Made by a program: the position numbers and the translations under genes. Positions 8,250 to 62,684 of a stretch of 64,000 bases of DNA are shown piece by piece; the first letter of the stretch is position 1; every line of letters starts with the position of its first letter. The stretch lies in the sequence record PP968062.1, one strand, 5' to 3'. Under the pieces are notes generated by a model that made no database searches, was not told where the DNA came from, and was given only the letters and a program-made list of their open reading frames with translations.

Positions 8250-8280
8250 ATAAAGCCTCCCCGAAGGGAGGCTTTTATGT
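8250..8280 (-). terminator. intrinsic terminator
   Basis: Plus strand ATAAAGCCTCCCCGAAGGGAGGCTTTTATG; T/A tracts on both sides. Confidence 0.85.
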
Positions 8281-8604: not shown

Positions 8605-8634
8605 ATAAAGCCTCCCCGAAGGGAGGCGTTTATG
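8605..8634 (-). terminator. intrinsic terminator
   Basis: ATAAAGCCTCCCCGAAGGGAGGCGTTTATG directly after the thyA stop. Confidence 0.85.
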
Positions 8635-14309: not shown

Positions 14310-14336
14310 CATAAAGCCCTCCCCGAAGGGAGGGCC
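14310..14336 (-). terminator. intrinsic terminator
   Basis: GCCCTCCC-TTCG-GGGAGGGC followed by TTTATG. Confidence 0.85.
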
Positions 14337-36503: not shown

Positions 36504-36534
36504 CATAAATGCCTCCCTTCGGGGAGGCTTTATG
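36504..36534. terminator. bidirectional terminator between convergent genes
   Basis: CATAAAT-GCCTCCC-TTCG-GGGAGGC-TTTATG. Confidence 0.88.
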
Positions 36535-41954: not shown

Positions 41955-42155
41955 CTACTCTACTGTAAATTCCTTACGGTCATGAGAGGCTGTAAGAGAA
42001 GCCATTGTATTACGCTCATCGAAGATACGCCTGGACATCGCGACCAGTTCTCCAAGTCGAGGTAGAGGCATCATACGCATGTCCGATTCATCGAACTTCG
42101 CGCCGCCTCCAAGACAGGGAGTTTCCCAACAACAGGAGCAATCAGAGAGAGCCAT
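41955..42155 (-). CDS. small hypothetical protein
   Basis: 66 aa, Cys-rich N-terminus. Confidence 0.4.
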   Translation of the reverse strand: MALSDCSCCWETPCLGGGAKFDESDMRMMPLPRLGELVAMSRRIFDERNTMASLTASHDRKEFTVE

Positions 42156-42659: not shown

Positions 42660-42780
42660 TTTTTACTGCCTTCTATTAAAAGGAATTAACTTGTCATTTA
42701 CGATATCATTCTCGCGAATGGATAGATTGTTAGCTGTTACATGATGATACCCTCAAGATATTAATCTCTAATGCATAACT

Positions 42781-42806
42781 GTGATATAGATTTCAAATTA
42801 TTTTTA
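42781..42806 (-). promoter_or_regulatory. putative early promoter
   Basis: Minus strand TAAAAATAATTTGAAATCTATATCAC. Confidence 0.55.
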
Positions 42807-42812
42807 ATGGAA

Positions 42813-42843
42813 CATAAAGCCTCCCCGAAGGGAGGCATTTATA
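42813..42843 (-). terminator. intrinsic terminator
   Basis: GCCTCCC-TTCG-GGGAGGC followed by TTTATG. Confidence 0.85.
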
Positions 42844-43428
42844 TTAGTTACCTTCGTAGGTGCCTTCAGTGCCTTGTTCTTGGCGACGAGCCAGGCGAGC
42901 ACGAATCACTTCACGAGCAGCCTTCATGTGGAACAGAGCCTTCTCGTTTTCTTCACAGGCGAACTTACCTTCTTGGAAACCTTCGAACACGATGATCGAA
43001 GCAGTCAGCAGGTCTTCGACAGTTACGCCGTTAACGCCAACTTCCGGGATCACACCATTCTGAAGCAGGATTACCAGTTCCAGTTTATTATCACCCGGTT
43101 CAGCAGCTTTGTTGCTAGCTGCATCGAAACCAGAGATCACGATACGCTTAGGAGCACCAGACAGTTCATCAATGCCGTAAGCATCGATAGTCTTGCCACC
43201 GGAGCTACCCGATACCTGACCATCTTCCATTTGTTCAACGGAGATGTCGATAGTGGTGCTTACACCAACGCCATCGGGTTGCGATTCAGCATTAGCATTG
43301 TCTACATCCAGATTGCCTTGGTCGAGGTCTTTAACCTCGGTTTCAGATTCAACCTTAGTGACGTCTACCGGTTGGGCAACGCCGTCCTGGCTCTCTACAC
43401 CGAGAGCCCATTCCAGACCTTTCATCAA
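42844..43428 (-). CDS. tad1: Tad1-like nucleotide-signal sponge with an acidic N-terminal extension
   Basis: C-terminal ILLQNG..PEVGVNGVTVEDLL....FEGFQEGKFACEENEKALFH...R...RR..GTEGT parallels the Tad1 pattern (IKFQKG..E...HGV...DLL...FQAGPF..REN..AL.H...R...R..VLGT). Confidence 0.8.
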   Translation of the reverse strand: MMKGLEWALGVESQDGVAQPVDVTKVESETEVKDLDQGNLDVDNANAESQPDGVGVSTTIDISVEQMEDGQVSGSSGGKTIDAYGIDELSGAPKRIVISGFDAASNKAAEPGDNKLELVILLQNGVIPEVGVNGVTVEDLLTASIIVFEGFQEGKFACEENEKALFHMKAAREVIRARLARRQEQGTEGTYEGN

Positions 43429-43434
43429 TTCACC

Positions 43435-43905
43435 TTAGGAGTAGCGGACTTTAACGAGTTGCAGAAGCAGCTCTACAGCGTAGTTACCGTCGGCTTTGGC
43501 GATACCCGGCATTTGTGCACGGATGCCAGCCATGGCGGCAGCTTTGCGCTTCAGAATATTGCGTTCTTTGCCGTTCTCGATTTCAGCTACCTCGTAGATC
43601 AGTGTATTGACGGCGACGTTCTCAATGGAAGCATTGATACGAGCACCGGCGGTGTATTTGCGAACCAGTTTGCGCAGTTCAGCCTCCAGGTTCTGGCCAC
43701 GATATTGCTCGGCGTCCAGATAACCAGTTGCCAGTTCAGCGAAATTACGAACACCCGATTTACCAACCAGGAGATTGGTCAGGGTATCGACAGGCAGAGT
43801 GGCAGCCAATTGAGCCAGGTCGTTACCTTTTACTTCAGCGCGGGCCAGTTCCAGAACGGAGTCAACACCGAGGAGTTTCAGAGCGATTTTACGAACGATA
43901 GACAT
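43435..43905 (-). CDS. hypothetical protein
   Basis: Start at 43905 (AAGGA SD); helical. Confidence 0.65.
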   Translation of the reverse strand: MSIVRKIALKLLGVDSVLELARAEVKGNDLAQLAATLPVDTLTNLLVGKSGVRNFAELATGYLDAEQYRGQNLEAELRKLVRKYTAGARINASIENVAVNTLIYEVAEIENGKERNILKRKAAAMAGIRAQMPGIAKADGNYAVELLLQLVKVRYS

Positions 43906-43921
43906 TATTGCGTTTCCTTTG

Positions 43922-45898
43922 TTAGAAGCGATCAGAAGTTTGTGCGAAGGAAGAGACCGTACGAGCGACCTCACCATCGAGAACCCAAGACATCAGGTTC
44001 GAAGGACTACGCCAGGATTTGAAACTCTGCACTGCACGAGTCAGGTTCAAGTTCAAACGTTTACCAGCGTAATAGAAGTCAGCCCAGGATTGTGAAGTTA
44101 GAGTCGACACGTAATCTTGGAACAGACTTTGTTCATCCCACACCGCTCCATCAGTAAGAGCAAGCGCAGTAGCAATACCACCGTCACCACCTACAGCTTC
44201 ACCAGCCGTTGCTGCTACAGCACGACCAGCAGTACCCAACCAGCTCGGACTAGCAAAGCCAGCCTTAAGAGGGATGTGCATCAGCTTAGATAGATCTTTA
44301 ACGCTGAAGGTAACTTCACAGCCAAGCATCTCATGCTCGGCGTTCCAACCTACGTTACCAACACCACGACGGATTTGAATACTGTCTACGATCCCCAACT
44401 GTCTCTGCACTCGACCTTTATGGAAGATCTGACAGATGAACGGAGATGTGTAGGCACTTCGACCAGCTGACCTTGGTAATCCCATTGGGAGAATCATGGC
44501 AAGTGGTACGTATATGTTCATGAACCTGGATATTTTATTTCCATACGGGGAGATCAACTGTACCGTGTAGGAAGCAGATGGTAGAGATGCCATCGCGGAT
44601 TCCCAGTATTCAGGAGCATCTACGAATGCTGCGCCTGCAAGGGTTTCTAGACCAGACAAGTTAACTGAGTCTAACGCGCCAGAAACAAAACTTTTAACCA
44701 TTTCAGTAACTGCACCAACCCCTTCAGTAATGTTACCACCCATGAAGTCGAAGGATGCAGCGCGACCTTCACCTACTTTCGTGTTCAGTGTTTGTACAAC
44801 ACCTACGTCACGAGTAGTGTTAGTGAAGGATTCGGAAACTTCGCCATTATAGTCAACACGGAATGTAACGAACTGAGAGCCGTCACGTTGTGCACCTACA
44901 ACGAAGTCGTATACGTTTTTGAGTTCACCCCAACTGGAGAAAGACTCGGTATCAATCACACCATTCTTTTCAGAAGGCTTCTTATCAGCTTCAAGATACT
45001 TCAGGAAGTAATCACGAGAGTCAGCGCCAGGTCGTGGGTCGCTAACAGCTTTAGCCATTTCCGATTCAATGCCACTACGAAGCTCCGCTAGAGTACGAGC
45101 TTTCTCAGCCATTGCTCGCATGGACTTCTGCGCTTGGTCAGACATCCGCTGCGTACGGCCAGCCAAAGACATTACGTCTACACCGCCATCAGGACGGAAG
45201 AACCCAGGGAAGATCTCATGCATACGCCTAACGTCATCCAACCCTACACGATGACCAGGGTCTTCAAGAGGACGTTGGGTATCATCGAGGATACGGGGAA
45301 CCATACCCATGGCAATTGCAAATTCGTTAGCCAGTGTGTTTACGGCAGACCAATACGCGTGCATAGTTGGTTTGAAGTAGAACCACTTAGAAGGCTGTGA
45401 TTTAGTCAAGAAGCTAATAACTCGGGATACGCCAGTTACCCCAAGGATGAACGGTTGCAGCGGCAGAGTGATGAAATAACCAGTAACGTTACCTAGGTTA
45501 TACCAAAGGTCAGACGTAACGCCAGTGTTAGCTAAGCCAGCTGCGGAGCGATCGTAGAAGTTGGTGAAGAACGATAGCCAGCTCGAATAACGAGGGACAC
45601 CGAACGACATATGGACTTCTTGTTTGGTATCATCATGAGCTTCGGAATAATACCGACCCATACCCAAGAAACGATCTTCATAAGTGCGTCCCCGACCCGG
45701 TTGACGGATATCGGCGTAGCGAGTGTACTGTGGGAGCGGGTTAATAGCGTAGCTACCACCCAGCGACGTGTTTGTGAATTTGAAAGCAGCCGAGTTAGCA
45801 TAGCGCCGTTTGGTTTGAGAACCGTAAGAGTTCTTGTTATCGTTGATCGGTAACAAGAAGGCTTGGCGCAACCAAATAGGCTTAACATCTGTTGCCAT
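43922..45898 (-). CDS. virion structural (tail/baseplate) protein, phiKZ gp182-like
   Basis: 658 aa, immediately downstream of the gp181-like gene; [23 protein letters not shown]. Confidence 0.75.
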
Positions 45899-45921
45899 TT
45901 TGATTTCCTTTTTAAACGGAA

Positions 45922-45945
45922 AATAAAGCCTCCCCGAAGGGAGGC
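45922..45945 (-). terminator. intrinsic terminator
   Basis: GCCTCCC-TTCG-GGGAGGC followed by TTTATTTT. Confidence 0.85.
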
Positions 45946-45952
45946 TCCATGA

Positions 45953-48900
45953 TTAAGTTAACGAGAGTGGCGACGGACGATTACTCGCGGGCGCCGATCT
46001 CATCAACGTGGAGGTCATACTATTATTTCCCCCACTACCGGTTTTTGCAGTCTCTTGCGTACCACTGGACTTTTGTTCGTTCAATTGTACCAGACGCTTG
46101 AGATGATCACGCATCTCAAGCAACGTCTTCAGTTGTTCAGCTTGGATGTCATCTACCTGCTGAGCCTTCTCGTTATTACGACGTATTTCGGCTTGACGTG
46201 TAGAGTTCTGTTGCTGGGCAACTTGCATAGCTGCTTCTTGTTGAGCTTGGACTACTGTGTTACCCGAATCGGCAGATGGGTTAGCGCCACTTGTAGTAGC
46301 ACCACCAACTGGCGACATCGGTGTAATACCTGGCAATACCGGAGTCTGCGCAGCAGCGCCGGTAGCGCTGTACGCTTCCTCACGAGCAACAGCATCTTTA
46401 CCAGCCTGACCGTTGTCTTCACTATTCCAGAGTTCAGCAGCAGATGCCTTAGCGTTAGCTTTGGCTTGTTCCTCTGTTGCCTCCTCAGTAGTCATGTTCT
46501 TACCAGCTTCTTGCGTGGCTACAGAGCTACCTTCTGCACCACCACGATGCTTCGCAATCTTCTCTTCGAACATCTGGTAGATTTCCCCGAGGGTACGAGG
46601 TTGGCCACCTTTCTTGTAGAAGATAGGACGGTTAGCGGATGCAGCTTCAGGGAATACCGATGCACCAATAGTGTCTTGATTACGAGTCAAGAACTTACGA
46701 GCGCCGCCAGGACCCATGAAGTGAGCAATGTACAGGTCTACGTCTGTCGGATCACGACCCAGTGCATCTTTCAGGAAGGTGTAGTTATCCTTAATGAAGC
46801 ACGCACCCATCAGGGCGTTGATACGTGGATCAAGACGTAGGCTACGAGCACCGTCGTCTGGCGGAATACCGAACTTGGAGCCATGTTTCTTCAACATTGC
46901 GTCCCAGGTATCATTGATAAACTGGAACCAGCCGGTAGCAGACGATGTCTTAGCTTTGACGGTGTAGTCGAAGTTAGACTCAAGAGATGCGAAGATGAAC
47001 AGGAGTTCTACAGGGATACCAACCATAGCTGCAACAGCTTGGAAGGTTTCGGCAGCAGCCTGACGAGACTTATTAGCTTTCGGATACGGAATCTGTTCCC
47101 ATGCACCACCGTTACCCTTCGTCAGGGTTCCGTAGGTTTTACCTGTAGCAGATACTTCACCGGCCAGACCAAGTTTGTACTTAGCACTTGCAGCAGAATC
47201 AGACACGTAGTCTATCGCTTCAGATGCTTTCGCCTTGGTGCTACCCCATGCATTACTTACGGTCTCTTTAGCAGAATCCCAAGTATTCGAAATGGATGCC
47301 ATTGCCCTCTCGGCAAAGCTACCACCTGCTGCGGCACTTTGAGTACCAGCTGCTTGGTCACCCGCAGATTGAGTTGGCGTAGACATGATGTCTTTGCTTG
47401 CATCTTTCTTGAGTTGTTCCAAGTCGGCTTCAGCCATTTTCTTGAGATCGTCTTTACTTCCTTTAACGGGGAAGAGGGAATCAACCTGCCATACACTGGC
47501 ACCATCTGTGTTAGTGGTACCCAGTACAGCATTACCTACAACAACTGCATCACTAGGCTTGAGTTTAGATTCCATGTTCGCAATGGTAGTACCTTGAGTA
47601 GTCCCGCGCATAGCACCGTAATAGGCACGTGCAACAGGCATGAAGCGACCAACGAACCAGTTGTAGTACGTTGCACGATCTTCATCATTACCCACGATAT
47701 CTTTACCAAACAGCGGAGCCGTTTCTTGCAGGATCGATTCTAGGTCACCACGGAACTCAGGAACACCTCCCTGCATGGATAGACCATTGAACACCATCGA
47801 TTCAGCATTCAACAGCGGATACACGTTGAAGAAGCTAAGTACTTCTAAACCGTAAGCACGCATCCGAATGGATTGTAATGCAGTCAGCTTAGTAGTAGCA
47901 GCTGCGGTAGCAACAATAGGAGCACCAGTAGAACCACCTAACCCAGGGAATGCTTTCTTAGCAGCAGCCAGAGGCATACTAGCTTTGGAAGGATCCATTG
48001 GACTAGGAGCGGTCTTACCAGTTGCAGTGTCAGCAGCTTTCTTAGCAGCGTCTTTAGCTTTATCAGCTACAGTCGTACCAGCGGCACCGCTTACATCCTT
48101 ACCTTCTTTCTTCTCGCCCGCTTTATAACGAACAAACAATGCTTTCCAAAGTTGATCAGCTGCCGGAATGGTATCTTCCAATTCACCTTCTTCAGAGAAC
48201 GGATCAACACGGTACTGCATCGGCGTATCACCCGACGTAGATACCTTAACAGCTTTAACCAAAGCACCTTTCAGTTCCTGAGGGAACTTATCATCGATCT
48301 CAACGAGTTTAATTTCATTCTTCTTGAGCTTAGCTAGAGCCTTAACCCAGGTCAAGAAGATCGGACGGAAACGAAGTTCCATCCAACGAGACATCCGCAT
48401 TACTTGGACGTCATTCTTAACATCGATGCCGAGGATATCTAGGATCGCTTTACCACCGACACCATTGATATTGAAATCAGGTTGTTCAGTGCGTTCGGTT
48501 ACCCGATCGAAAGCATCTTCCAGAGCTTGTACTTTTTGCTGTTGGTCGTGATCAGTGATACCGTATTGCAACATGCGAAGACGTCGGAACTCTGCCTTGT
48601 TATCGTTCATTTGACCGAAGATCGGTTTCAGAATGTAACGAGATGTCAGTTGGCCCAATGGGTTAAGACTCAGAGTAGTCAGGAGACCCGTCTGTTTAGC
48701 GTCCATCCCATCTTTGCTATAACCGTAAGCCATAGCGCCTGTACCAACCGCAGCAGCTGTACCACCAAGTAGCCAAGGAGCAGCACGTTTGGCCAGACCC
48801 ATAAGTCGACCTTTAGCACCACCCTTCATACCGCCGCCCATCAGTACGTCAAACGCACCCGAGCCTTCTTCGCCTTCAGTACCAGTAATCTTACTGAAGA

Positions 48901-51900
48901 TGCCTTTCAGTCCATCTGACAAACCTTTCAGAACTTTGTTTTGAGCTTTCTCAGATCCATCTTCTTTACCCTTCAGCTTATCCATCAAGCCACCAACGCC
49001 TTCTTTGGCTTTAGCAGCTTTATCCTGCCAGCTACCAACACGGAGCTTCTCAGGAACTTGGGTTTGCAGAGTTTCAAGGATACGTCCGAGCAACATCTGA
49101 TCAGTAGTTTCAAAGTCTTCGTAAGGAACCCGTTCGAATAGACGACCGAGAACCGAACCACCGGCATTTGCAAAACCACCGAGTACTTTCTTAGCAGCGC
49201 CGCCGTAGAACTTACCAGTCTTCTTCATTGCCCAACCCATGTACTTCATGGAAGCATCGATGTACTTGGAGCGAGCAGCTCGGAAGCCACGCCAGATCGT
49301 CCGACGGAAAATCCCTTTGTTCTTAGCGAGGATGTGTTTAGTACCATCGTAGTTACGGAGTTCTTTGTACTGAGACGGATCTAGTACAGGTTCACCCTGT
49401 TCGTTGTAGATGGGACCGTAAACGTCACCGAAGTTTTCGATAACCCTACCTTTCTCATCGAAGTACTTACCAGCGTTAACTAGTCGACGTTCGAGTACAG
49501 GTACGTTATCTCCGGGAAGGTAGGCATTTTGTGTTTCGATAGCGAAGTTGAACAGAGCCGAACCCATACCGATGGCAGTCTTAGCACCAAACTTCAGTGC
49601 AGACCAAGCCAGAGTGGAAGTGTTCGTAGCCATGAACTTAGCGCCCCAGCCCATCGCGTTAGCCAGACGACGACCAGTCTTAGTCAAACGCCAGCGTTTA
49701 CGAGTAGCACGGGACCAGAGTCCACTAGCCAGTTCTTTAGCCGTAGCTAGAATAGAACCGTTCTTATCCAACAGATCACCCTTGATGTCTTGCATCGAAG
49801 TAATCTGTTCACCGTCGGAGTTATAGTACTCACCATTCTTCAGGCCTTTAGCCGTAATAATGGGTTCTTGTTCTCCATCTAAGTGCCAGTCAAACTTATC
49901 GTCTTCAGTAGCTTGTTGTTGCTGAGGTGTAGTACCCTCAGAGAACTGCTGAGCAGGACTGTTCTGTTGGCCCATCAGAGCACTACGGATTTTAGCCGCG
50001 GCATCCATCATAAAGGCAGGAAGCTCTAGACGCATTCCTTTACTATCGAACAGACCTTGAGCAGCTTCAGAAGCAGTCAGAACTGTTACGCCGGTTGCTG
50101 TCACTACTTTACCGGTAATGTCTTGGACAGATTCAATAACCTTCTTGGTATTAACGTCTACCAGGTTACCCTGAATAAAATCGATACCTTTAATGATCGG
50201 TTCAGTTGGATTGAACTTCGTGAACACGTCCATGATCTTGGCTTTCTGTCCAAGCGCGAACTGGGTAGGATCCTGTTGGAACTGATCCATATGTTCCCCA
50301 AACTTAGCCTTAGACTTAGAATAGAGATCCTGGCCCATGATACTCGCATCATTCCAAGCACCTTGCATACCAGCTACATACGGACCGAATTGACCATTCT
50401 GCATGTTGCTTGCAAAGTTCTGGAAGCCTTCACCGTATTTACCCTGCATGTATTGGAACTTGCCTTGGGCGATACGACTATAGCGAGAGAGTTCTTCTTT
50501 GACACGAGCTTCTTGAGGAGCATGCTTATTACGGAAGCGGCGCATTGCATTCAGAGCGTTAGCTTTGGCTGCGCCAGGATAAGCCGGACCATAGAAGTTC
50601 TTGTCGTTCACGTCACCTGATGCTTCCGGCTGGTATCCACCTTCCGCCCATGGGTTAGTATCAGTTACGCCAGAGCGCATGATTTCCCAAATGCGGTTAT
50701 AGTTGATACGGTCCTGTCCCTGTTCAGTGACAATGATACCAAGCATCCGAAGAGGCTCAGTTTGACCAGCGTTGATCAGGCGATGTACTTCTTTAACAGG
50801 ATCACGGCTTACCGAACGAATGTCCAGGAAGGCACGAGAGTATTCATCCCGTAGACGATGGTTGTCAGCATTGTCTGCCATCTTACCTTTATCGTCGAAC
50901 TGGAACTTACCTTTAAAGAAACGTTGTAGTTCATCAGTGATGTTAATGTCAAGACCGTCCATATAACCACCAGAGCGGATGTAAGCTTCTGGATCGAAAC
51001 GACGGTTAGTGGACGCATCCCTCAACATACGTTCAGCAAGGGCCTTACGAGCATCAGGGGAGAGTTTTCCTTCCTCATCCATCTGATCGATAGCATCGTT
51101 AATAGCGCCGCTAGCACTGCGGATAGAGGCAGCAGGAATGATCTTCTTCTGGAGACGATCATCTGCTTGCGATTGTACTTCGAAACGACCTGTAGTGATG
51201 TCAAAGACTTCACGCTCAATATCGTCACGACCAGTACGGATCATACGCAGTTCTTGTAACTGACGAGACAGGTAACCAGGGATGACTTCAACGATACTAC
51301 GTTGGGTCAATTGGTTAAAGGCCGCACCTTGATCAATTGTTTGATAGTTTCCGTTTTCCAGACGATCATTCAGATGGAACTGAGGAACGAATGGCATAAT
51401 AGCATCGCGCAATACACCGCGGATACCGTAAGTGTTCTGGTAGTTGTTAACGTATTCTTGCAGGAATGCCGGAACGTTGTCCAGTGCATAACCTACCTGA
51501 TGATGACGTCCACCGAAACGGTTGGAAAGCTTTTCCATGGTAGGACGTACTTGACGACCAGCCCACGGTACAACGGACGACTTGAGGAAATCTGCACCCA
51601 GCTCGCCAGCGAACTGACCAGCAATGCTGTAACGATTATCCCAAGCAGAACCACCTGCCATATCACCCATTCGAAGACCGGCCACGATCTCAGAGAGACG
51701 ACTACCGATGTTCTTCGATACACGATCGTTAACTTGGTTACCATAACCACCTAGGAAACCATGAAGGCCTTGAGCAGCACCTAGACCCAACCGGCCTAGC
51801 ATATTGCCACCACGACCTTTCGCACCGAAGTTAGTCAGTTCACCAATATTACCTTTCTTATAGTCAGGTAGACCAGTGTTACGGACCAATGCTTCAAATG

Positions 51901-52720
51901 CCTTATTCTGCAATTCAAGGTTAGCTTCTTGAACTTTAACCAGATCACGGATACCCATGTAGGTACGGAACTGGAGCTCAAGACCTTTACGTTGAATTCC
52001 ATAGTTGACTTGTTCGTTATATCCTACAAGACGAGTTAGACTGTCTACAGCCATGCCCATCGAGCGGGACATAAAGTCGAAGCGCCCAGCGCTAACTTTA
52101 TCACGAATACCACGTTCTGCACGTTCAACCGCAGCTCGCGATATTGCACCCTGTTCACTACGCTGGAAGTTTTCTTTACTTACCAGTGTGTTTTGATCCA
52201 GAGCGGCTTTAATTACGTTTGCATCATCCTGTTCTTGACGACTGCGACGAATAGCGATTTGATCCCGTTGGGAATCAACCTCGTATTGGTACTGCTCAAC
52301 TTTCCGATTAAGACTATCGGAAATATTATCGTACAAGGCGTTTGGAATGCGATCTTTTAACTGAGGTAGATAATCCTGTGCTTTACGACCAAGATAGTCA
52401 AGGTCGGATGCATTAACTCGTTCAACCGTATCTTTGATATCGGTTACAGAAGCCATTACATCGTCATAGGCGCCAAACAAACGTGCAAAGCCATCCGGCG
52501 CAGCACTGCGCAAGAAGTTTCTTACGATGTCTTTGGTTTTCAATCCACCGAGGAAGCCCTCTTTCAGACCCGATTTGAATTCGGTAATTGGATCGCCAGG
52601 TTTGGCTCCAGGACCGAGATCATCAAACAGGTCATCCAGCTCATTCAGGTCAAGTACGCCAATTCGCCCCTGGGCATTTGTCCCAGCAGGTTTAGGCAAC
52701 CTGGTCTTTCTTGTAGCCAT
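45953..52720 (-). CDS. tail-associated lytic transglycosylase / tape-measure-like protein, phiKZ gp181-like
   Basis: 2256 aa. C-proximal SLT domain IFASLESNF...SSATGWFQFINDTW...LDPRINALMG...YIAHFMGPGGA; adjacent to the RNAP beta' gene. Start at 52720 (GGAG SD). Confidence 0.9.
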   Translation of the reverse strand: MATRKTRLPKPAGTNAQGRIGVLDLNELDDLFDDLGPGAKPGDPITEFKSGLKEGFLGGLKTKDIVRNFLRSAAPDGFARLFGAYDDVMASVTDIKDTVERVNASDLDYLGRKAQDYLPQLKDRIPNALYDNISDSLNRKVEQYQYEVDSQRDQIAIRRSRQEQDDANVIKAALDQNTLVSKENFQRSEQGAISRAAVERAERGIRDKVSAGRFDFMSRSMGMAVDSLTRLVGYNEQVNYGIQRKGLELQFRTYMGIRDLVKVQEANLELQNKAFEALVRNTGLPDYKKGNIGELTNFGAKGRGGNMLGRLGLGAAQGLHGFLGGYGNQVNDRVSKNIGSRLSEIVAGLRMGDMAGGSAWDNRYSIAGQFAGELGADFLKSSVVPWAGRQVRPTMEKLSNRFGGRHHQVGYALDNVPAFLQEYVNNYQNTYGIRGVLRDAIMPFVPQFHLNDRLENGNYQTIDQGAAFNQLTQRSIVEVIPGYLSRQLQELRMIRTGRDDIEREVFDITTGRFEVQSQADDRLQKKIIPAASIRSASGAINDAIDQMDEEGKLSPDARKALAERMLRDASTNRRFDPEAYIRSGGYMDGLDINITDELQRFFKGKFQFDDKGKMADNADNHRLRDEYSRAFLDIRSVSRDPVKEVHRLINAGQTEPLRMLGIIVTEQGQDRINYNRIWEIMRSGVTDTNPWAEGGYQPEASGDVNDKNFYGPAYPGAAKANALNAMRRFRNKHAPQEARVKEELSRYSRIAQGKFQYMQGKYGEGFQNFASNMQNGQFGPYVAGMQGAWNDASIMGQDLYSKSKAKFGEHMDQFQQDPTQFALGQKAKIMDVFTKFNPTEPIIKGIDFIQGNLVDVNTKKVIESVQDITGKVVTATGVTVLTASEAAQGLFDSKGMRLELPAFMMDAAAKIRSALMGQQNSPAQQFSEGTTPQQQQATEDDKFDWHLDGEQEPIITAKGLKNGEYYNSDGEQITSMQDIKGDLLDKNGSILATAKELASGLWSRATRKRWRLTKTGRRLANAMGWGAKFMATNTSTLAWSALKFGAKTAIGMGSALFNFAIETQNAYLPGDNVPVLERRLVNAGKYFDEKGRVIENFGDVYGPIYNEQGEPVLDPSQYKELRNYDGTKHILAKNKGIFRRTIWRGFRAARSKYIDASMKYMGWAMKKTGKFYGGAAKKVLGGFANAGGSVLGRLFERVPYEDFETTDQMLLGRILETLQTQVPEKLRVGSWQDKAAKAKEGVGGLMDKLKGKEDGSEKAQNKVLKGLSDGLKGIFSKITGTEGEEGSGAFDVLMGGGMKGGAKGRLMGLAKRAAPWLLGGTAAAVGTGAMAYGYSKDGMDAKQTGLLTTLSLNPLGQLTSRYILKPIFGQMNDNKAEFRRLRMLQYGITDHDQQQKVQALEDAFDRVTERTEQPDFNINGVGGKAILDILGIDVKNDVQVMRMSRWMELRFRPIFLTWVKALAKLKKNEIKLVEIDDKFPQELKGALVKAVKVSTSGDTPMQYRVDPFSEEGELEDTIPAADQLWKALFVRYKAGEKKEGKDVSGAAGTTVADKAKDAAKKAADTATGKTAPSPMDPSKASMPLAAAKKAFPGLGGSTGAPIVATAAATTKLTALQSIRMRAYGLEVLSFFNVYPLLNAESMVFNGLSMQGGVPEFRGDLESILQETAPLFGKDIVGNDEDRATYYNWFVGRFMPVARAYYGAMRGTTQGTTIANMESKLKPSDAVVVGNAVLGTTNTDGASVWQVDSLFPVKGSKDDLKKMAEADLEQLKKDASKDIMSTPTQSAGDQAAGTQSAAAGGSFAERAMASISNTWDSAKETVSNAWGSTKAKASEAIDYVSDSAASAKYKLGLAGEVSATGKTYGTLTKGNGGAWEQIPYPKANKSRQAAAETFQAVAAMVGIPVELLFIFASLESNFDYTVKAKTSSATGWFQFINDTWDAMLKKHGSKFGIPPDDGARSLRLDPRINALMGACFIKDNYTFLKDALGRDPTDVDLYIAHFMGPGGARKFLTRNQDTIGASVFPEAASANRPIFYKKGGQPRTLGEIYQMFEEKIAKHRGGAEGSSVATQEAGKNMTTEEATEEQAKANAKASAAELWNSEDNGQAGKDAVAREEAYSATGAAAQTPVLPGITPMSPVGGATTSGANPSADSGNTVVQAQQEAAMQVAQQQNSTRQAEIRRNNEKAQQVDDIQAEQLKTLLEMRDHLKRLVQLNEQKSSGTQETAKTGSGGNNSMTSTLMRSAPASNRPSPLSLT

Positions 52721-52787
52721 GGTCAACTCCATCGATATAAACAATCATATCGTTTAGCTTTTTGTAACCCCTAAGAGGAAATTTGAA

Positions 52788-61850: not shown

Positions 61851-62684
61851 ATGCATCCTTTGGCACAATCTTCTTTTGGTGTCCAAAATTCTCCGCAGAA
61901 CCAAGTTCGTATCGGTTGCACCATGCTAGCCGGTACAGACAAAAAAGGAATTCTTGCGCCGAATGCGGACGGTTATTACACTGTAGTTCTGGGTGCCTAT
62001 GGTACACATAACTCCGCTGGTATGTTCTATGACGAAGCCAGTGGCGTTGCCATGTTCGATCCGAACTCTTCTTTGATGCGGCGCCTTAAGAAAGGTGTAC
62101 TCTTCATGGAGTTCAAACATCCGGAACCGTTTACAGATCTGATGATCGATGGTCGCGTTGTTCGTCAACCGATGGATGATCGTCAATACCTACAACGTAT
62201 TCGTATGATCGACGATAACCGGGTATGTGCACACATCCGTGCTCTGACTATTGTCCCCGGTAAGAATGAGAATGGTAAGACCGTTAAGATGGTCGTAGGC
62301 GAAGTTAAGCCTTACGGTCCCTTCGGTCACATTTTCAAAGAGTCGCTGGATAACCCGAGTATCAATACTTATTGCTCCGTACGTTCTATCACTCAAGATG
62401 ATGTAATGCGTGGCATCAAGTACACTCGTGAAATCGCCACATGGGACTTCGTAGGTGAAGGCGGTATCTACATCGCTAACAAGTATACCTCTCCTGCACT
62501 GGAAAGCTTCTCTGATACTGAAGTCATCATCACTCCCGCTACCCTGTGGAAGATGGAAGACGAAGCTAAGAAGCGTGCTAACATCGGTATGGAATCTGAT
62601 CCTAACCTTGATGTTACTGACCTGATCCAACAACTAGGTTGGTCTCGTCGTAAGCCTGTACGTGTACCTGCTTACATGCGATAA
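61851..62684 (+). CDS. prohead (head maturation) protease, phiKZ gp175-like
   Basis: GYYTVVLGA, EFKHP (His), VCAHI, GEVKPYGP, CSVRS (Ser), TWDFV; C-terminal ALES/GMES self-cleavage-type sites. Confidence 0.85.
   Translation: MHPLAQSSFGVQNSPQNQVRIGCTMLAGTDKKGILAPNADGYYTVVLGAYGTHNSAGMFYDEASGVAMFDPNSSLMRRLKKGVLFMEFKHPEPFTDLMIDGRVVRQPMDDRQYLQRIRMIDDNRVCAHIRALTIVPGKNENGKTVKMVVGEVKPYGPFGHIFKESLDNPSINTYCSVRSITQDDVMRGIKYTREIATWDFVGEGGIYIANKYTSPALESFSDTEVIITPATLWKMEDEAKKRANIGMESDPNLDVTDLIQQLGWSRRKPVRVPAYMR

Follow-up and report, generated by a model that had tools for sequence, protein, structure and literature searches.

The window, a stretch of 64,000 nucleotides, showed 100% identity to Pseudomonas phage HPP-Temi (PP968062.1, genus Pawinskivirus, 302.7 kb); subtracting 62000 from a record position gives the window position used here. 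On the minus strand, an open reading frame (ORF) runs from a TTG at 43428 to a stop codon at 42844-42846. The codon directly after the TTG is an ATG (43425), and translation from this ATG gives a protein of 193 amino acids (42847-43425). A sequence-only reading of the window had proposed this ORF (42844-43428, minus strand) with the TTG as its start. The ORF is real, but we consider the ATG one codon inside to be the likelier start, because the spacing to an upstream AAGGTG hexamer is 5 nt from the ATG versus only 2 nt from the TTG and because close homologs begin at the Met encoded by this ATG. The upstream gene ends in the same frame, with its stop codon three codons ahead of the ATG. The features of the locus are collected in Table 1.

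Table 1. Coordinates of the Tad1-like gene, its parts and the neighboring features in the window
Feature	Position	Strand	Basis
Tad1-like gene, ortholog of phiKZ gp184, 193 aa plus stop codon	42844..43425	-	ORF/translation, BLASTP, phmmer
AAGGTG ribosome-binding site (Shine-Dalgarno-like hexamer)	43431..43436	-	Read from sequence; overlaps the end of the upstream gene
Acidic, predicted-disordered leader, residues 1-64; candidate propeptide/capsid-delivery segment	43234..43425	-	pI, pLDDT, homologs
Site A, G9-V10-E11, prohead-protease-type (S/A/G)-x-E in an L-x-W-A-x-x-L-E block	43393..43401	-	44/44 long homologs
Site B, S62-V63-E64, prohead-protease-type motif directly ahead of the folded domain	43234..43242	-	43/44 long homologs
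Tad1 sponge domain, residues 65-193	42847..43233	-	AlphaFold2, Foldseek, profile versus PDB, tblastn
Codons for F150, N160, R177 and R181, plus E158 and F165	42883..42978	-	HMMER alignments onto CbTad1 residues
GC-rich hairpin with T-rich tail, terminator-like	42819..42836	-	7 nt after the Tad1-like stop codon
Second copy of the hairpin, between the gp181 and gp182 homologs	45928..45945	-	Scan
gp183 homolog, 180-aa ORF 43435-43977 with likely start at Met25	43435..43905	-	BLASTP to phiKZ gp183 from residue 25, synteny
gp182 homolog, 658 aa	43922..45898	-	PHROG 3181 (E = 2e-244), synteny with phiKZ and metagenomic relatives
gp181 homolog, large tail protein with transglycosylase region	45953..52744	-	PHROG 3201 and 4067
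Head maturation protease (gp175-like), presumed processing enzyme	61851..62684	+	PHROG 3014 (E = 4.4e-91)

The deposited HPP-Temi record has no minus-strand genes in this region. It annotates a 364-amino-acid coding sequence (CDS), HSP1_CDS0206, on the plus strand at window positions 42928-44022, overlying the Tad1 gene as well as the gp183 homolog. If this long ORF, the one called in GenBank, were the real gene, the minus-strand ORF would be its shadow. A PHROG search with HSP1_CDS0206 returned no match, whereas the two minus-strand ORFs beneath it have strong homologs, a match to a solved structure, conserved synteny and a ribosome-binding site. On these grounds the plus-strand ORF was rejected as the true gene, a possibility that we regard as extremely unlikely; HSP1_CDS0206 is probably an antisense shadow ORF, which leaves the deposited record without its Tad1 gene. 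Automated annotation can overlook a Tad1 gene entirely, as in this record, and since the record calls the antisense ORF, CDS-based surveys of anti-defense genes would undercount.

The gene order around the Tad1-like gene is that of phiKZ: gp180 (a virion RNA polymerase subunit), gp181, gp182, gp183 and gp184, with the thymidylate kinase gp188 further along. This order is also kept on metagenomic jumbo-phage contigs. Phage phiKZ gp181 is annotated as a tail-associated endolysin. For the gp183 homolog, Met25 (43905) is the probable start, and with this start an apparent 56-nt overlap with the gp182 homolog is gone. By contrast, a stand-alone Tad1 homolog of 135 amino acids is flanked on a ~40-kb contig by a DUF927 primase/helicase-like gene on one side and an exonuclease-like gene on the other, in a replication rather than a virion gene setting. 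The protease homolog that the sequence-only reading had pointed out at 61851 was confirmed as a "head maturation protease" by its PHROG match.

The hairpin behind the Tad1-like gene is an 18-nt GC-rich element that occurs in the window in five exact copies and one copy with two mismatches, where 0 would be expected (8255-8272, 8610-8627, 14317-14334, 36511-36528, 42819-42836 and 45928-45945). All but one of the six follow a stop codon by a few nucleotides, on the strand of the gene concerned; for 8255-8272, no such gene end was identified. The element looks like a recurrent terminator-like sequence. Behind the Tad1-like stop codon, it gives a terminator-like end to the gene unit, which the sequence-only reading had described as a gp182-like structural unit. 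The gap between the hairpin that follows the gp181 homolog and the start codon of the gp182 homolog is only ~25 nt (within 45899-45952), so that transcription of the gp182, gp183 and Tad1 homologs may come from gp181 by read-through and not from a promoter of their own. No sigma-70-like site was found within 45899-45952, which fits a phage transcribed by RNA polymerases of its own. Between positions 42000 and 46000, megablast-level similarity to genomes of the phiKZ type is confined to 42778-42881 (84% over 104 nt); this segment, which takes in the Tad1 3′ end, the hairpin and ~40 nt downstream, may mark a conserved regulatory junction.

By sequence and by predicted fold, residues ~65-193 are a Tad1 domain. 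With the single protein sequence as the query, the best phmmer match in the PDB was gp184 in 8Y6V chain I (E = 1.6e-36, query residues 75-193 against chain residues 112-230); the same search reached CmTad1 (8KBB, E = 4e-7) and CbTad1 (7UAV/8KBE, E ~0.05). A profile of 54 homologs aligned with nearly the whole chains of CmTad1 (E = 1.9e-21) and CbTad1 (E ~2e-17 to 3e-17). BLASTP against phiKZ gp184 gave 56% identity over 117 amino acids of the Tad1 domain (E = 5e-45), and tblastn against isolate phages reached an SBSphiJ7 CDS annotated as Tad1 (E = 3e-6). In an AlphaFold2 model built from the 54-sequence alignment, residues ~70-184 had a pLDDT of ~90, with block means of 89 to 97 except in one loop. 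The modeled strands (70-72, 78-85, 92-98 and 116-121) and long helices (136-152 and 158-184) match the expected Tad1 fold, in which an N-terminal antiparallel sheet is followed by two long C-terminal helices. A Foldseek search of the PDB, which had been proposed as a check on Tad1 structures, returned Tad1 crystal structures at all of ranks 1 to 20 (E = 7e-7 to 2e-5, probability 1.0, TM-score to target 0.60 to 0.76, 22 to 27% identity in the structural alignment), and the next match had an E value of 0.19. The original assignment of residues ~78-194 to Tad1 agrees with the profile, the Foldseek matches and the kept pocket residues. Neither the window protein nor its close homologs had a match in a local Pfam scan, though PF24729 is precomputed on the homologs; we put this down to differing sensitivity or model versions and did not count it against homology. 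An NCBIfam match to nitrosocyanin was far below the cutoff and was discarded.

In CbTad1, F82, N92, R109 and R113 form the pocket for gcADPR and 2′,3′-cGAMP, and double mutants lose binding, while a cyclic-trinucleotide site at the trimer interface involves R90/T97 in CbTad1 and R88/T95 in CmTad1 (10.1101/2023.11.15.567273). The numbering offsets of the PDB chains were fixed by matching all named residues (-1 for CbTad1 and +10 for CmTad1). HMMER alignments placed F82, N92, R109 and R113 on F150, N160, R177 and R181 of the window protein, so that all four are kept, and N160, R177 and R181 are invariant in 54 of 54 homologs, including stand-alone sponges. The FQ, EN and R-x3-R positions picked out in the sequence-only reading are found as F150-Q151, E159-N160 and R177/R181. 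The trinucleotide-pocket residues are not kept, E158 being aligned with R90 and F165 with T97; phiKZ gp184 likewise has Glu at the Arg position, and the cyclic-trinucleotide pocket is a property of the crystallized Tad1 members, not necessarily of the whole family. None of the eight CmTad1 hexamer-interface residues is identical in the window protein (0/8, phmmer alignment). From these alignments we infer that the gcADPR/dinucleotide pocket is conserved and that the crystallized trinucleotide site, perhaps also the hexamer (a trimer of dimers), is not. Because of E158/F165 and the interface residues, the oligomeric state and ligand range may differ from those of crystallized Tad1.

The leader (residues 1-64) contains 15 acidic residues (D+E) versus 3 basic ones (K+R), with a pI of 4.05, and is predicted to be disordered (AlphaFold2 pLDDT of <50). 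Forty-four of the 54 homologs are at least 185 amino acids long and carry a leader, and the other ten (121 to 144 amino acids) start at the domain. The best-conserved leader positions are L4, W6, A7, E11, D14, G15, A17, D21, D33, D35, V53 and D60. An acidic leader with GLE, GVE and SVE sites had been described from the sequence, and all three sites are present (P1 Glu at 5, 11 and 64), but their number is at chance level: residues 1-74 contain three (S/A/G)-x-E motifs versus 2.05 expected from composition shuffles (P = 0.33), and the GLE at E5 is conserved in only 14 of the 44 long homologs. The nonrandom feature of the protease-type sites is the conservation of their positions at E11 and E63/64, not the motif count in a single sequence. 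At the P1 Glu column of site A, every long homolog has the motif, with G at P3 in 23 and S in 21; at site B, an (S/G)-x-E motif is found at E63/64, in the same or the adjacent column, in all but one. A cut at site B would leave 125 to 130 amino acids in every long homolog, and the stand-alone homologs fall within 121 to 144 amino acids. For the N-terminal block, no other copy was found by a regular-expression search for it in other head proteins over the 64-kb window, by an HMM scan of the window and record bases 1-50000, or with a degenerate DNA pattern in two 50-kb stretches that hold the internal head protein and capsid genes.

Tad1 homologs in jumbo phages were thought possibly to have been reported already, and phiKZ gp184 has indeed been published as Tad1. 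The protein was described as a minor component of the capsid, located at the vertex on its inner face, and was modeled in the inner vertex-binding complex, where it fills a gap between gp86 and a hexamer; much of it was not resolved, and the modeled part consists mainly of strands (Yang et al., PMC11297242). The same paper, citing Thomas et al. 2012, states that gp184 is cleaved by the gp175 protease. Injection of C-terminally FLAG-tagged gp184 was detected by western blotting in translation-blocked cells (Fossati et al. 2023, PMC10449902). Chan et al. 2025 identified orf184 as tad1, found it nonessential, and described a gp184 whose N terminus stays wedged into the capsid, the head protease releasing the C-terminal part for injection at the next infection (bioRxiv 10.1101/2025.11.23.690004). 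The Tad1 identity and injection of gp184 also appear in a review (PMC13282480) by way of its citation of Li et al. Nature 2024, and where gcADPR binding and relief of Thoeris are attributed to the phiKZ ortholog, this is only by citing Li et al. 2024 (10.1101/2025.11.23.690004, PMC13282480). Mention of phiKZ is absent from the 2023 preprint by Li et al. (10.1101/2023.11.15.567273). AntiDefenseFinder reports Tad1 in phiKZ. The propeptide and packaging aspect, put forward in the sequence-only reading as the new part, had therefore already been published for phiKZ gp184.

The window protein and phiKZ gp184 have much in common. The genes are syntenic, the domains show the identity given above, the N-terminal block is the same, and both genomes encode a gp175-type protease. 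Phage phiKZ gp184 has S-L-E at the site aligned with E11 and G-H-E at residues 106-108, just ahead of the domain, and a C-terminal G-T-E-G-T-Y-x-G-N tail is common to both proteins. However, phiKZ gp184 has 230 amino acids versus 193 here, the leaders can be aligned only over the first ~11 residues, and the window phage belongs to a different genus, Pawinskivirus. The capsid and injection experiments are those on phiKZ, whereas the window protein is known from its sequence.

A module of ~50 amino acids lies between leader and domain in phiKZ-type proteins (P0055-P0058 and P0045; 214 to 230 amino acids). AlphaFold2 modeled it as a helix (51-62) and three or four short strands (65-100) with a pLDDT of ~70 to 77, followed by a low-confidence linker with the G-x-E site. 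Alignments indicated that the window protein and the PA1C/BRkr, phiPA3 and 201phi2-1-type homologs are without this module. Foldseek searches with models of the window protein and of a gp184 relative 96% identical to gp184 both returned lists without 8y6v_I and were uninformative on which part of gp184 had been modeled. If the ~50-amino-acid module is the capsid-bound piece of gp184, attachment in the window protein could differ; and if the modeled strands of gp184 are this module, one may speculate that the module-less lineage carries the sponge as a free internal protein.

Taken together, these observations make it probable that the window gene encodes a two-part protein, a Tad1 sponge behind a protease-type leader, that is packaged in the virion, cleaved and injected with the DNA. 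The proposal of a packaged, matured and injected sponge draws support from orthology, each of its elements having been published for phiKZ gp184, and it is from this orthology that we infer, for the window protein, that it is packaged and injected, where exactly it is cut and which ligands it takes. The Tad1-like protein would be made together with the gp181 to gp183 virion genes and would enter the prohead. There, the gp175-like protease encoded at 61851-62684 would cut after E64 and possibly after E11, and a Tad1-sized product of ~129 amino acids would be ejected with the DNA. Once injected, the sponge would bind immune second messengers ahead of any phage gene expression; its pocket, lined by F150, N160, R177 and R181, would sequester gcADPR of Thoeris and probably also some cyclic dinucleotides of CBASS.

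Two other readings of the protein were weighed against this one. Since phiKZ gp184 was modeled as part of the inner vertex-binding complex, the window protein might be mainly a structural minor capsid protein that stabilizes the vertex, its Tad1 fold co-opted and its sponge activity vestigial. Against this, the full set of four pocket residues is retained, three of the four without variation in the 54 homologs, stand-alone sponges among them; phiKZ gp184 is nonessential and is reported as an active injected Tad1, and phage Goslar possesses the vertex complex but no homolog of gp184. We regard a mainly structural role as quite unlikely. The other reading is that Tad1 in this lineage is an unpackaged cytoplasmic protein whose leader serves solubility, regulation or localization. 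It draws on the absence of the folded phiKZ-type module, on the predicted disorder of the leader and on the absence of the N-terminal motif from the other head genes of HPP-Temi that were scanned, but the N-terminal block and both protease-type sites occupy the same positions in module-less and module-bearing proteins, the gene ends a virion gene unit in all relatives examined, and the predicted cleavage product has the size of a stand-alone Tad1. A cytoplasmic protein thus seems unlikely, and the packaged, cleaved and injected sponge is the reading that we prefer.

Within the packaged-sponge reading, a more specific version is conceivable, although we hold it to be doubtful. Pawinskivirus, phiPA3 and 201phi2-1-type phages would have lost the ~50-amino-acid module or never had it, keeping the disordered acidic leader alone; the conserved Glu-ended block of ~11 residues would be a minimal, self-sufficient head-delivery signal of phiKZ-like phages, the sponge would be ejected as a free and not a capsid-bound protein, and, with the trinucleotide pocket missing, its targets would be narrowed to Thoeris signals and the dinucleotide signals of CBASS.

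A similar way of working is found in T4 internal protein I*, an anti-defense protein with a short N-terminal leader that is packed into the prohead, trimmed after Glu by the prohead protease and injected with the DNA. The likeness is one of working only; the sequence and fold of I* are unrelated, and its target is a restriction enzyme, not a signaling molecule. With the stand-alone Tad1 proteins (SBSphiJ7; CbTad1, 7UAV/8SMD; CmTad1, 8KBB), the window protein shares the fold and the F/N/R/R pocket; unlike them, it has a 64-amino-acid leader and sits in a virion gene unit, and it keeps neither the trinucleotide Arg/Thr of CbTad1 and CmTad1 nor the hexamer-interface residues of CmTad1. The anti-CBASS protein Acb2 is likewise a nucleotide sponge, and the Pfam family precomputed on homologs of the window protein, PF24729, is named "Acb2/Tad1 hairpin." No Acb2 structure was among the significant Foldseek or sequence matches, however, and the window protein is Tad1-like.

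The principle of packaging, processing and injecting a sponge is already established by phiKZ gp184/Tad1, and the HPP-Temi gene adds another member. Such a preloaded, injected counterdefense explains how signaling immunity can be blunted ahead of phage gene expression. What the locus adds is that the arrangement is conserved over several phiKZ-like genera and many metagenomic relatives, in at least two leader architectures. The module-less leader and the annotation error in the deposited record are new but minor details, and the residue-level prediction of ligand range is a further useful by-product.

A scan of 1.84 billion representative proteins with residues 65-193 retrieved 2016 proteins at an E value of ≤1e-3 and 136 at ≤1e-10. 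Among the best 150, 45 ended in the domain and had an N-terminal extension of 50 residues or more, so that extensions of this kind are common. Examined for acidity and for a protease-type site at the junction, 23 of these 45 extensions were acidic and 22 contained a motif, numbers not clearly above chance. In one retrieved protein of 2848 amino acids (P0066), 16 stretches match residues ~31-74 of the 129-amino-acid Tad1 piece used as the query, and it looks like a repeat protein of the Q-N-G...G-V-N-G-V-T hairpin region. Short Tad1-like proteins annotated as "structural protein" were seen in several phages not of the phiKZ type, among them the Bacillus phages Bc431v3 (orf166), BCP8-2 and McCartney, Lactococcus phage 1706 and Klebsiella phage Eowyn. 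Judging by these record annotations, virion association of Tad1 may extend beyond jumbo phages.
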